Shown here: positions 20,770-41,308 of the stretch, piece by piece
Layout: every line of letters starts with the position of its first letter
Position numbering within the stretch: the stretch's first letter is position 1
From: Octopus bimaculoides
Taxonomy: Eukaryota
Length of the DNA: 64,000 bases
Direction of reading: 5' to 3'
Assembly: GCF_001194135.2 (NCBI RefSeq)
Contig: NC_068984.1
Coordinates: 15,712,570 to 15,776,569 of the forward strand
Notes under the pieces: generated by a model
What the model was told of the DNA's origin: nothing
The model's input: only the letters and a program-made list of their open reading frames with translations
Databases searched by the model: none
Program-made: the position numbers and the translations under genes

Positions 20770-20849
20770 ACATAAAGAAGCTTCGTCCTCCAAATCGGAA
20801 GTGTATAGATGATCACTTATCTCAAATAAAAGAGAAAAGCAAGCTTCTT
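20770..20849 (+). CDS. Coding exon A (first located exon) of coiled-coil Bfr1/PPI-like gene
   Basis: tttcag|ACATAAAG...CTTCTT|gtaagt; 80 nt, phase 1 to 0; (x)IKKLRPPNRKCIDDHLSQIKEKSKLL. Confidence 0.8.
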
Positions 20850-20871
20850 GTAAGTACCAGATTTTTACAAA

Positions 20872-21091
20872 TCTCTCTCTCTCTCTCTCTCTCTCTCTTT
20901 CTCTCTCTCTCTCTATCTCTCTCTCTCTATCTCTCTCTCTCTCTCTCTCCCCTCCCTCTCTCCCCCCTCTCTCTATCTCTTTCTCTCTCTCTCTCTCTGT
21001 CCCTCTCTCACTCTCTCTCTCTCTCTCTCTCTCTCTCTCTCTCTCTCTCTCTCTCTCTCTCTCTCTCTCTCTCTCTCTCTCTCTCTCTCTC
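20872..21091 (+). repeat. (CT)n microsatellite, about 220 bp
   Basis: Nearly pure CT repeat starting 22 nt after the exon A donor. Confidence 0.95.
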
Positions 21092-21581
21092 AATATTTAT
21101 TTATATTTAAATATTTGGAATAGTTTGATTAATCTAAAAATAGACACCTTTCCTTTTGAGAATTATTCACTCTCAACAGTTTTACATATCTCATGTTGTG
21201 ATCCAGTATAGATTCTTTGTAGATTTCAGTATAGATTCATACTGAAATTATAAAAATAAGTCATTCACTTATATTGTTTAGCCCCAGGTCAGACCTCACT
21301 GCACAGATTTATGATAAAAGTTGTTTGAGCCATGACCATTCTTTTGCCAGGCATAGGCACGTAAAAAAACACCATTTGAGTGTGGCTGTTGCCAGTACCG
21401 CTTGACTGGCCCTCGTGCCGGTGGCACGTAAAAAGCATCCACTACACTCTCGGAGAGGTTGGCGTTAGGAAGCTCTGCCAGTTCAGATTGGAGTCTGGTG
21501 TAGCCATCTGGTTTGCAAGTCCCCAGTCAAATCGTCCAACCCATGCTAGCTTGGAAAGCGGACGTTAAATGATGATAATGA

Positions 21582-21660
21582 TATATATATATATATATAT
21601 ATATATATATATATATATATATATATATATATATATATATATATATATATATATATATAT
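21582..21660. repeat. (AT)n microsatellite
   Basis: Uninterrupted AT run after an RTE-tail copy. Confidence 0.95.
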
Positions 21661-37239: not shown

Positions 37240-37970
37240 GTGAGTTCTTGTTCATTTTATATTTAAAATATGATATTTAGCCGATTTGTATTCTTTGTAA
37301 TTTATTGAAGAATTATTTTAGTTTTTAAATAATACTTACATGTGTCATGTCTAATTGATTGCAGCAAATGCAATTGTGAAATAATTACTTAAGAAAAATA
37401 CTGTTTGCGTTATGTTTCATATTGTATATGTTTAATAGATTTTATGTAGTTATAAAATATTATAGAAATATATATTTCTTTATTGCCCAAGGACAGACAA
37501 AGGGATTAAGTCGATTACATCGACCCCAGTGCTTAACTGGTACTTATTTAATTGGCCCCCGAAAGGATGAAAGGCAAAGTCGACCGTGGCAGAATTTGAA
37601 CTCAGAACGCAACAGTAGACAAAATACTGCTAAGCATTTCGCCAAACATGCTAACATTTCTGCCAGCTCGCTGCCTTAAAATTATTATAAAAATATAGAC
37701 ATTTTTATTATCTGTTTTTTTTTTTTTTTATCTCTAAATTCAGAACTTGAATCCCTTTTTTTATTTACTTTCATTTCTCTTTGTATGCTCCAAAATTAGC
37801 TATCTCTACAACTAACTTTGATTTTTTTTTGTTTTTTTCTATTGTACTACTTTGATCAATTTCACAATATTGCTATGTTCCAAACATTTTTCTCTCATGA
37901 ATTTCACAATATTAGATAATATAAAAAATTAAATATTTATGTAGATATTTTTTCCATTTATTTTCTTCAG

Positions 37971-38087
37971 AACAAGCCTTTAGCACATTCTCCGGAGATA
38001 TTTTCTTTGTTTGAAAGTGTTAATTTGCCACCCACTTCAAATTTCTGTGACATTTTCTCAACAATTGATAAACTCCAACAGTTAAAG
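37971..38087 (+). CDS. Coding exon J
   Basis: cttcag|AACAAG...TTAAAG|gttcgt; 117 nt, phase 0 to 0; NKPLAHSPEIFSLFESVNLPPTSNFCDIFSTIDKLQQLK. Confidence 0.88.
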
Positions 38088-38296
38088 GTTCGTTATATTA
38101 AATTTTGATTGATTATTCCGATAACATAATATCAGTAGTTGTGCATTAGTTCACTCAAATCCAGACACAACAGCTGCTCAACAATTGATAAACTCCAACA
38201 GTTAAAGGTTCGTTATATTAAATTTTGATTGATTATTCCGATAACATAATATCAGTGGTTGTGCATTAGTTCACTCAAATCCAGACACAACAGCTG
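38057..38296 (+). repeat. 120-bp tandem duplication spanning the exon J 3' end and its donor
   Basis: 38057-38176 repeated at 38177-38296 with one mismatch (agtagtt / agtggtt). Confidence 0.9.
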
Positions 38297-40885
38297 GTAT
38301 TATTTTACTTTTGGTTTGTTTTGTAAATCTATCTCTTCTCTGCAACCATAGAAAATGAACTAAAAAGAAAAAAAAAAAAGATTAATTTTAATGCTTGAAT
38401 TGAATATTTGTCATATTTTTGAGCATATAAAGCGAATAACATGTCAGAATTGATAGAGTACCACATAAAATGACTTAGTAAAACAGTAGAATCTGAGAAA
38501 ATAAGAGATAATCTGTATTGGTAGGTTCACTTTTCCATGCTCCCATGAGTCTGATAGAATTTGTTGAGGTGGATTTTCTGAGGCAGGATGCTTTTCTTGT
38601 CCCAACACTAAATTGTTTCGAAGTAAGGTAACCAAGAATATTTTCACTGAAGATTAGAAACAAAGGATACTGCTTGCTTGACAGTTGTTAATATCTACCC
38701 TGTAACGTCAAGGCAAAGCAGCATCAACACGCACAGACACACATGCATGAAGGCGCATGTACACACACACACACACACACACACACAAAATAGGCTTATT
38801 TCAGTTTCCAGTCACAGGGCTATATTAGAAGGCACTTGCCCAAGGCAGCACACAGCGGCAGTGAACCTGAAGCAAACTGCAGATATTAATAAAATATACT
38901 TCAAAAAATAAAATAAATTTTGTTTTGCAGTGGAGACACGGCTATATGGTTAAGAAGTTTGCTTTACAACCATGTGGTTTTGGGTTCAGTCCCACTTTGC
39001 AGTACCTTGGTCAAGTATCTTTTACTATAGCCCTGATCTGACCAAAGCTTTGTGGGTAGATTTCATAGTTGGAAACTGAAAGAATTCTGTTCTGTGTGTA
39101 TTTTCAATTTCCCTTTTTCCAACATATGTGCTAACTGTAAAACAAATTTCCCTGCCATACAAGTGGTTCTGGCCTTGAAGTTGCAGATCATCCTTTGTGG
39201 TGCAGTCTTCGTTAGGTTAAGGAAAGAGATTACTAGAAAAAAGCAGCAATTATGATAAACATTTGTAGTTTTCATCCCAGGTTTAGTTTTCACAACAGCA
39301 TTCTTTTAGTTACCCTTCAAGCTTTCAAGGCAGACTATGTCATTGCTCGACCTGCTAGACATAGTAGTCAAATTGCTCTCGTATCACACCTTCCATCTAA
39401 AAAAGGAATCTAAGAAAAAAAAAGGTGGGATGGTCATAGCTGGAATGTCTTTGACCATAAATCTTCTTCATCAAGATTAAACAACCATCACCATTTATTC
39501 CTTTCTTATATGAGTTCATTGTTCATCAAGATTTATTGAGAACCAAATCTTTGCTTACATGATTTCTAAATAACTGAATTGGCTTCAATTTTCTTTTGTT
39601 TAACCTTCATATTAAATGTTCTGATTTGTTTTCACAAACCATTAAGTTTACCAAACATTTTATTGGCAAGCCCATCAAATGACTGGCAAAATACTTTATC
39701 ATCATCATCATCATTTAACGTCCGCTTTCCATGCTAGCATGGGTTGGACGATTTGACTGAGGACTGGCAAGCCAGAAGGCTGCACCAGGCTCCAATCTGA
39801 TCTGGCAGAGTTTCTACAGCTGGATGCCCTTCCTAACGCCAACCACTCTGAGAGTGTAGTGGGTGCTTTTACGTGCCACTGGCACGAGGGCCAGTCACAC
39901 GGTACTGGCAATGGCCACGCTCAAAAAGGTGTTTTTTACGTATCACCTGCATGGGAGATAAATCTAAAATTGTCTCATGTATGCCATCATATTTTGTATC
40001 TAATCTAAACAGCTACTTATTCATTTTAACTCTAAAGATTTTCCTAGGACCTTTTTATTTTTATTTCATTAGCATTTGTTCTCTGTAATTTTCCCTTTGC
40101 TATGATATATTCCCTTTCAATTTGTAATTGCTAATCAAAAATTATTCAGTTAGTTATCAAGCAAACAGCTACTTACATGGTTTAATTAAAACTAACTTAA
40201 TAATTAAGTTCATCTCTACTGACTCTCTCTCTGAAACTTAGCAATTCTAGGAGGAAGTTTTGTCTTTTTGGCATTTTGCTTTCCACACAACCGATCTCTA
40301 TAAAGAGCATTTGTGTCACCTTGTTTTATCCAAAATCTTTAACACTTTACCATTTAATCCAGCCCAAATATTCCACCTGTTTTATGTTAAAATTGACCAG
40401 ATCTAACCTCTCACACCTAACCTACAATGTCATTTTAAAAATATACAAAACACTGTTGAAATCTTGAAGCTACAAGATAATGCATTATTAATACAAAACA
40501 ATGTGAATAAATAAATGTTATATTTGACAAAGAAATCTGAATGCTGAAGGGTTAAAAGAAATCTCTTGTAATAATATTTTCTTTCGATTGAGGATGAGTT
40601 ATTTAGGGATACATATTACCTGGACATGGGGACAGCAGATACACACACACACACACACACACACACACACACTCTCTCTCTTTCTCTCTCTCTCTCTCTT
40701 AATCTTGCAAAATAAGTTAATAGGGAGGACTTCTGCTTTTTGAACAAAATTGTTGTTGGTGGCAATACAAATTTTGTCATATTGTTGGTGTTAGGAAGGT
40801 GTCAATATATATTAAAATATTATATAAATTACATGTTTTCTTCTGTTACATATTTACATATTCTTCTTTTTTTTCTTTTTTACAG

Positions 40886-41308
40886 AACCAACTAGAAAAA
40901 TCAGGACTACAAAAGGATAATTGTAAAGAAAATGGTAGTGTTGCTTCAGATGATATTTGCTTAAGTGACTCTGGTTATTCAGCTGATGGAAGTGCTGTGT
41001 GTGATCTTTCTCGTCAGGTTAGTCACCGAGGAAGTACAGACACGATTTCTAATACTACCAATTTATTAGACATCAACCAGATGAGTGATCCAAGTAGCAA
41101 ATCCACAACAGTGTCCTCACCAGAAGTTGAAAGCAATGAGGTAGAAGACGAGGAAAGTTCTGAAAGTGATGGAAACAGTTCACCGTTATCTTTAAATAAA
41201 GAAAGATTATCTATGATTTTAGACAATGTACGTCGGTTATCTGTCGAAGATACATTTGATAGTACTGACTTTGATAGTGAGAACCAAACAAATTCTGACT
41301 TAAAATAA
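40886..41308 (+). CDS. Terminal coding exon K (Ser/Asp/Glu-rich tail, TAA stop)
   Basis: Pyrimidine tract, ttacag|AACCAA; 423 nt open frame NQLEKSGLQKDNC...ENQTNSDLK*; phase 0 matches exon J. Confidence 0.88.
   Translation, partial: NQLEKSGLQKDNCKENGSVASDDICLSDSGYSADGSAVCDLSRQVSHRGSTDTISNTTNLLDINQMSDPSSKSTTVSSPEVESNEVEDEESSESDGNSSPLSLNKERLSMILDNVRRLSVEDTFDSTDFDSENQTNSDLK

Follow-up and report, generated by a model that had tools for sequence, protein, structure and literature searches.

A 64,000-nucleotide stretch of the Octopus bimaculoides genome (assembly GCF_001194135.2, contig NC_068984.1, positions 15,712,570 to 15,776,569 of the forward strand; hereafter the window) was analysed. With a probability of about 0.85, it carries exons 2 to 12 of an intact, expressed octopus gene that is an animal orthologue of fungal Bfr1. 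That the gene is real and that its product is homologous to the Bfr1 family is firmer still, and very likely. An earlier note, made from the DNA sequence alone, had proposed such a family member here, with a likeness to the proton-pump interactors (PPIs) of plants.

The gene model was rebuilt independently from open frames, AG/GT boundaries and phase bookkeeping, and was then checked against orthologues. Eleven exons were obtained on the plus strand between positions 20770 and 41308. These join in frame to a spliced length of 1553 nt, made up of 2 nt that complete a codon, 516 codons and a TAA stop, and all ten introns are GT...AG with a polypyrimidine tract. The rebuild reproduced the 11 GT-AG exons and the 1553 nt of the earlier note, although the gene itself has at least 12 exons and not 11: the N-terminal RP sits 9 residues past the start codon, which is in a distant upstream exon.

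A tblastn search with the predicted protein of O. vulgaris recovers every exon, and the exons follow the O. vulgaris locus collinearly in order and spacing. Identity of the spliced protein is 94.8% to that of O. vulgaris, 87.4% to that of the octopod species represented by transcript contig L001 and 76.7% to that of Argonauta hians. Contig L001 (1743 nt; Logan SRR3401912) is collinear with 11 of 11 exons and has its junctions at identical nucleotides, so that all of the proposed junctions agree with a transcript of another octopod. The ratio of nonsynonymous to synonymous divergence (dN/dS) from the L001 coding sequence is 0.16 (Nei-Gojobori; dS 0.37, dN 0.059; 515 codons), and the gene is therefore under clear purifying selection.

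Relationship to fungal Bfr1

An initial search of 5.8 billion proteins identified 36 relatives, from cephalopods, bivalves, gastropods, a chiton, annelids, Saccoglossus and the crinoid Antedon, together with 3 ENA sequences. Most of them carry the automatic name 'uncharacterized' or names that contradict one another. An animal profile was built from 23 sequences, 20 from named animals and the 3 ENA sequences of unnamed source, and was run with HMMER against 1.84 billion representatives. There were 1558 matches at E<=1e-3, 141 of them at E<=1e-30. Matches with E-values of 1e-31 to 1e-40, spanning profile positions of about 13-440, are fungal proteins of ~450-520 residues. They include proteins of chytrids, Blastocladiomycota, Mucoromycota and Zoopagomycota. 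Four carry a telling name: the Mixia osmundae 'Nuclear segregation protein Bfr1' (UniRef; E 1.3e-31, Z=1.84e9) and proteins of Basidiobolus, Entomophthora and Malassezia named 'multicopy suppressor of BFA (Brefeldin A)', with E-values of about 1e-35 (Z=1.84e9), the four together ranging from 1e-31 to 1e-36. We take 'multicopy suppressor of BFA' to be the yeast database description of BFR1.

When the animal alignment was compared with one of 19 fungal sequences using hhalign, the probability was 100%, with an E-value of 4.5e-44 over 384 columns. One yeast-type member compared with single mollusc proteins by BLASTP gave E-values of about 1e-17 to 1e-22 over ~410 residues. In a joint alignment of animals, fungi and protists, five motifs are aligned in the same order: an N-terminal basic-Pro motif, an EEK block, a C..L..LQ helix, a basic patch and a C-terminal helix. 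The assignment to the Bfr1 family is thus borne out, in that an animal-only profile reaches fungal Bfr1, the matches to fungal proteins are near full-length, and the motifs are collinear. No better full-length match to another family was found, Pfam giving nothing above threshold and searches of the PDB by sequence and by fold giving generic coiled coils. Two automatic names point the same way. The orthologue from Saccoglossus (XP_002736388) has been called 'PREDICTED: nuclear segregation protein BFR1-like', and that from Trichoplax sp. H2 'Uncharacterized protein C458.02c', which is a fission-yeast systematic open reading frame (ORF) name.

The S. cerevisiae Bfr1 sequence used here (470 aa) is a provisional, hand-entered one; its residues R38, H79, K138, F211, Y225 and F239 agree with PMC6859859. 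This sequence scored E 2e-64 against a fungal profile that excludes it, 3e-46 against a combined profile and, in hhalign with the animal profile, a probability of 96% and E 4.4e-9 over 305 columns. Budding-yeast Bfr1 is a divergent member of the family, and the link to animals is strongest by way of other, less divergent fungi.

Several points weigh against an intact animal orthologue of Bfr1. The animal-only hidden Markov model (HMM) gives the hand-entered S. cerevisiae Bfr1 just 20 bits, which is not significant database-wide. Coiled coils inflate similarity scores, and the shuffle and reversal controls cover the PPI comparison only. A Foldseek search of the predicted structure against the PDB returned generic hairpins only (SMC arms, PcsB, SH3BP5), at E>=0.02. 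On the side of the gene model, the support for the junctions comes from the transcript of another octopod species, and the 5' exon and promoter are not in the window.

It could be argued that the protein is a generic Lys/Glu-rich coiled coil and that its likeness to Bfr1 and the PPIs is compositional. The lack of any Pfam family above threshold, the SMC-arm-like hairpins that are all Foldseek gives, the high HMMER bias scores and the conflicting names of the orthologues ('Lebercilin domain-containing', 'DNA ligase 1-like', 'calponiny domain-containing') would each fit such a protein. However, the fungal matches reach E 1e-31 to 1e-40 among 1.84e9 sequences and are near full length, and the hhalign E-value is 4.5e-44. 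The non-heptad motifs keep a fixed order and include Pro, Cys and His residues that lie beyond the coiled coil, and in the PPI comparison the reversed and heptad-shuffled nulls drop to a probability of <=13%. The generic reading is largely ruled out already, and we consider it very unlikely beside homology to Bfr1.

No Pfam family scored above threshold on the model, its orthologues, fungal Bfr1 or plant PPIs, using a Pfam set without PF27883 and PF28572. These two families, which are precomputed on plant PPIs, are recorded on none of the animal matches. A word-index search with a mixed animal/fungal/protist alignment, which was swamped by Lys/Glu-rich candidates, returned animal proteins only and no named fungal or plant matches. 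Identity as a lebercilin, DNA ligase 1 or calponin was rejected, there being no such Pfam match even at E<=1 for the model or the Mytilus and Biomphalaria proteins.

The second long helix of three Mytilus orthologues has a sub-threshold Pfam match to the N-terminal arm of seryl-tRNA synthetase (E about 1e-3, 17-20 bits, cutoff 28). This arm is an RNA-binding antiparallel coiled coil, and the match is probably mere coiled-coil likeness.

Exon structure and surrounding sequence

All of the exons are on the plus strand, as are the five motifs quoted in the earlier note, each of which was found where it had been placed; in the model they occupy residues 5-8, 90-124, 255-266, 327-335 and 343-372. 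Exon A (20770-20849, 80 nt) encodes IKKLRPPNRKCIDDHLSQIKEKSKLL after 2 nt that finish a codon begun in an upstream exon, and contains the N-terminal basic-Pro motif RPPN at 20784-20795. Exon B (24267-24401, 135 nt; KQYVNEEES...SEIIQK) is part of the first long helix, and is followed by exon C (25557-25627, 71 nt; NNTLSNLQSGLTYKNENKINEAI(K)), with INEAIK at 25611-25628. Exon D (26941-27042, 102 nt) encodes NLERQLNCNNFTLREEKKIVAEIDSLKRSKKPL, with NLERQL... from 26942, and its EEK motif is the block that the family conserves best. This block is predicted to span the end of a short second helix, the turn that comes next and the beginning of the second long helix.

Exons E (29588-29660, 73 nt; NYRAQKKEIDELRAQQTKKRKEND) and F (31699-31795, 97 nt; DFYHKIHHLRDKEEEKQKRSVFLQKSIKELHS) lead to exon G (32997-33162, 166 nt; EIDKLEEQKK...EKITNYI(R)), which encodes the end of the long second helix. 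An alternative exon G acceptor at 33008, which would join exon G directly and in frame to exon E, was ruled out by exon F at 31699-31795 and by the transcript-backed acceptor at 32997. Exon H (35533-35684, 152 nt; EETVASPNPNAKRIQHCNILINYLQQF...) contains the conserved P...C..L..YLQ helix, with the motif IQHCNILINYLQ at 35573-35608. Exon I (37103-37239, 137 nt; PALEIKDDDGAKYVLLKK...NKKSRKGRKKTS) contains the conserved basic patch KKSRKGRKK at 37207-37233. The conserved C-terminal helix motif is in exon J (37971-38087, 117 nt; NKPLAHSPEIFSLFESVNLPPTSNFCDIFSTIDKLQQLK), with HSPEIF... from 37986 and STIDKL at 38058-38075. Exon K (40886-41308; 423 nt with the TAA stop counted) encodes a disordered tail that is rich in Ser, Asp and Glu and carries the motif SDSGYSADGSAVCDLSRQVSHRGSTD.

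Exon A opens mid-codon, so the model is 5'-incomplete and lacks at least one coding exon. In the L001 transcript the protein starts MDSVLPIQ and in Argonauta MDLLLPQQ, followed by D-IKKLRPPN. Regular expressions, blastn using the L001 5' end and O. vulgaris exon 1, and a 27-mer allowing 3 mismatches all failed to locate the first coding exon (MDSVLP.Q plus 1 nt) within 1-20769. In O. vulgaris, exon 1 (...ATGGATTCAGTATTACCGAAGCAAG|GTATGT) encodes MDSVLPKQ and is 74.6 kb upstream of the counterpart of exon A; in the extract of locus OX597817.1 the two are at 10001-10025 and 84654. A first intron as long as the 74.6 kb of O. vulgaris would explain why exon 1 was not found, as the window offers only 20.7 kb upstream. 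The octopus exon 1 therefore probably lies outside the window, and the complete protein should be ~525 residues long. The deposited O. vulgaris protein begins MFIDQLTTFSFIN, at odds with the transcript-supported MDSVLP.Q at the annotated start of that gene, and its N-terminus looks mis-predicted.

An assembly gap of 392 N at 33775-34166 is inside the intron between exons G and H (intron 7). Exon G (...EKITNYI plus 2 nt) joins exon H (1 nt plus EETVASPN...) in frame, and the junction reads ...NYIREE... in O. vulgaris and L001 and ...NFLREA... in Argonauta, with no residue between. The G/H intron is collinear with that of O. vulgaris, where the gap corresponds to about 268 nt. The gap hides no exon and leaves the coding model unaffected.

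A tandem duplication of 120 nt, with 2 copies that are 97% identical, is present at 38050-38289 on the plus strand. The duplicated unit consists of the final 38 nt of exon J, the GT donor and 82 nt of intron, and O. vulgaris has a single copy. With splicing at the first donor, the second copy falls within the intron; use of the second donor would lead into a stop (VRYIKF*). The duplication may be a lineage-specific event or an assembly artefact.

The gap within the locus, the copying of the exon J donor and the first exon missing from the window could together be taken as signs of a decayed pseudogene or a chimeric assembly, perhaps broken by the gap or by the 120-nt duplication. This is highly improbable. 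The frame of 516 codons is unbroken and all introns are GT-AG, the dN/dS of 0.16 is that given above, and order and spacing match the O. vulgaris locus. The gap falls in an intron, and the long first intron of O. vulgaris accounts for the absent exon 1. An intact gene is the better description of the locus.

The flanks of the gap (33330-33660 and 34190-34400) are dispersed repeats of two families, with 8 and 10 copies in the window on both strands, for example at 29976-30291, 28568-28743 and 37495-37677. They account for many recurring short ORFs (for example ...PVPPDWPSCRRHVKAP...). ARAGORN and Rfam made no call in these repeats, and Rfam and tRNA scans of the window found nothing. The window is AT-rich, repeat-dense animal DNA. 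In intron 1 there is a (CT)n microsatellite about 25 nt past the exon A donor (20873-21090) and a (TA)n-type repeat at 21570-21670; the (CT)n tract yields a spurious 118-aa 'RERERE' ORF on the minus strand.

Downstream, 4.4 kb past the stop codon of the gene, there is a 177-aa ATG-initiated ORF on the plus strand (45670-46203) with an acidic middle and no Pfam match. On the minus strand at 62821-63975, an ORF resembling reverse transcriptase has a YIDDILV motif and a match to Pfam DUF7047 (E 1.6e-10), and is broken by a gap of 654 N. It looks like a retroelement remnant.

Predicted architecture and function

An AlphaFold2 model made from the 23-sequence alignment has a mean predicted local distance difference test (pLDDT) score of 70, and of >90 for residues 10-220. 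Helices are predicted at 10-80, 87-103 and 108-244; together they make up a long antiparallel hairpin, and the best-conserved block lies at its turn. Short helices are predicted at 252-266, which holds the conserved C..L..YLQ, and at 269-275. The model then has a predicted disordered stretch at 273-335 with the Lys/Arg patch, a conserved C-terminal helix pair at 345-353 and 362-388 (HSPEIF...) and an acidic, Ser-rich disordered tail. As in Bfr1, the architecture is that of a long coiled coil with no canonical RNA-binding domain, there being no Pfam domain. A sequence search of the PDB with the family profile returned generic coiled coils only and no family member with a solved structure. The fold comparison is neutral to the sequence evidence, as expected for a coiled coil.

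The tail motif SDSGYSADGSAVCDLSRQVSHRGSTD (residues 403-428, about 40960-41040) is Ser-rich and conserved in molluscs as S[DE].G[IVY]SA[TD]..ES..CE[LM]SRQ.S, and fungi lack it. One possibility is a linear motif, peculiar to the animal branch, that is phospho-regulated or binds a partner. A FFAT-like acidic motif in the tail, EDTFDSTDFDSE (residues 497-508), was set aside as it is not conserved in Argonauta.

The Bfr1 of yeast is non-essential. It is found with Scp160 in polysome-associated messenger ribonucleoproteins (mRNPs), is enriched on polysomes bound to the endoplasmic reticulum (ER) and has hundreds of mRNAs as binding targets while possessing no canonical RNA-binding domain (PMC6859859, PMC6940804). 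It restrains P-body formation and is needed for the synthesis of Erg4, Pmt1 and Pmt2 (PMC6859859, PMC6940804). By homology, the octopus protein would most likely belong, in the cytosol, to polysome-associated mRNPs, above all those at the ER. It would probably bind mRNA or ribosome-bound partners, such as the vigilin/Scp160 orthologue, via its coiled-coil and basic regions, and would probably tune the translation of a subset of mRNAs. We give this transfer of function from yeast Bfr1, as a polysome/mRNP factor, about an even chance.

Further points against the yeast parallel come from the six RNA cross-link residues of yeast Bfr1, at 38, 79, 138, 211, 225 and 239 (PMC6859859). With the hand-entered yeast sequence, these map in the octopus protein to a gap and to I58, A116, Q177, E191 and E205, and five of the six are not conserved. 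The Y225 column ('LY..KR') is the sole aromatic one across the family, and octopods carry Glu there. The surface that contacts RNA is therefore not simply transferable from yeast. The cross-link residues have been described as conserved among yeasts, and the mismatch thus bears on mechanism more than on membership. The EEKKIVAEIDSLKRSKK block at the hairpin turn is almost invariant and is therefore marked as the candidate functional core. Together with the basic patch, this block would be a better candidate for the functional surface than the cross-link residues.

Plant interactors and other known relatives

For the comparison with plants, part of Arabidopsis PPI1 was entered by hand as a bait, and it matched one Arabidopsis protein at 100% identity. 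It had 228 plant matches, and most of the named ones among the best 120, which were listed, are called 'Proton pump-interactor 1'. Against 90 plant PPIs, hhalign gave the animal profile a probability of 95.9% (E 5.5e-9, 160 columns), the fungal profile 96.4% (E 1.4e-9, 161 columns) and the combined animal/fungal/protist profile 97.8% (E 1.3e-12, 217 columns). Reversed alignments gave probabilities of <=6.7%, and 40 shuffles of 7-column blocks, which keep composition and heptad periodicity, gave <=13.4% with E >=0.002. The animal consensus YKSE.KI.EAI.RLE.QL...NF.L.EEKKIV.EID.LKRSKK pairs with the plant consensus SSEEELN..I.SL.YRIQHES..L.EEKQIL.EIK.LEGTR.

The alignment is limited to the N-terminal coiled-coil domain: it runs from the basic-Pro motif, across the EEK motif, to the second long helix. 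In hhalign, none of the remaining motifs (the C..L..YLQ helix, the basic KK patch, the HxPEIF motif at the C-terminus) was aligned to PPIs. Consequently, the earlier note's claim that the motif order of PPIs recurs here holds for the N-terminal coiled-coil half, EEK block included, and fails for the other three motifs. In profile-to-sequence searches of plant PPIs with the animal HMM, the best score was 26 bits (E 0.33), which is not significant database-wide.

The 96-98% probabilities in hhalign and the aligned S.E..IN..I..L.Y......L.EEK.I..EI..L block might suggest an animal proton-pump interactor in the strict plant sense, which is a tail-anchored regulator of P-type H+-ATPase at the ER or plasma membrane. 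However, the alignment ends after the coiled-coil domain, and the profile-to-sequence scores are as weak as described. The C-terminus of Arabidopsis PPI1, ...YWVYAAPAALVVLLLLVLGYYYVL, is a clear membrane anchor, and the octopus protein has no hydrophobic segment, its maximum 19-residue Kyte-Doolittle score being 0.73. All of the animal and fungal relatives tested likewise have none, except for one chytrid protein with an internal hydrophobic stretch. Animals are not known to have the H+-ATPase that plants and fungi carry in the plasma membrane, nor an orthologous pump. There is only a very slight chance that the octopus protein is a strict interactor of this kind. As judged from its sequence, it is instead a Bfr1-type protein that has a domain homologous to one in PPIs without being a PPI itself.

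The named animal matches come from molluscs, annelids, a hemichordate, a crinoid, a placozoan and a millipede. Vertebrates, insects and nematodes were missing from the names read, these being the 36 relatives and about 30 of the 150 listed profile matches, and no systematic survey was made. It is a tentative suggestion, held at somewhat less than even odds, that Bfr1 and the plant PPIs form two branches of a single, ancient family of eukaryotic coiled-coil mRNP proteins, and that among animals the Bfr1 branch was retained only outside the classic model lineages. If this is true, the vigilin-partner function could be studied in animals, and plant PPIs might be membrane-tethered translation/mRNP factors besides being pump regulators.

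The novelty is modest. For O. vulgaris and Argonauta a hypothetical protein had already been predicted from the gene, and twice automatic annotation had pointed to Bfr1. In the searchable literature there was no paper on an animal Bfr1 homologue and none naming Bfr1 together with proton pump interactor. Bfr1, which has no recognisable RNA-binding domain to point to its mechanism, is known almost solely from budding yeast, where it links ER mRNA translation, P-body control and ploidy. Its clear orthologues across several phyla of animals mean that the family is not a fungal peculiarity, and the coiled-coil link to PPIs joins two literatures that do not cite each other. Misleading automatic names ('DNA ligase 1-like', 'Lebercilin domain-containing') are corrected and the O. 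vulgaris N-terminus is flagged. The advance is at the annotation level and is not a new kind of system.

Among the closest known relatives are other invertebrate orthologues (Saccoglossus XP_002736388, Trichoplax TRIADDRAFT_58379 and the 'uncharacterized' proteins of molluscs and annelids), which share 30-95% identity, the architecture and the EEKKIVAEIDSLKRSKK block. They differ in the length and sequence of the tail, and octopods carry Glu at the 'LY..KR' position that is otherwise aromatic. Plant PPIs share with the octopus protein the N-terminal coiled-coil domain, over about 160-217 columns including the EEK block in profile-profile comparison, whereas their C-terminal half is another one, ending in a membrane anchor, and their role in stimulating the H+-ATPase has no obvious animal counterpart.

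Fungal Bfr1 (BFR1/YOR198C in S. cerevisiae) shares collinear homology over about 385-430 residues. This includes the N-terminal basic-Pro motif, the long helical hairpin with its L.L.EEK..V.EI..LK.SKK block, the (I)P.F..E...C..L...LQ helix, the Lys/Arg patch and the C-terminal ...F..L.V..P.....I...I..L..KK helix. Both are without a canonical RNA-binding domain and without a membrane segment. Identity between the fungal and animal proteins is about 20-25%, however, and in place of the third coiled coil of fungal Bfr1 the animal proteins have a long disordered Ser/Asp/Glu-rich tail, which in molluscs has a conserved motif of its own.

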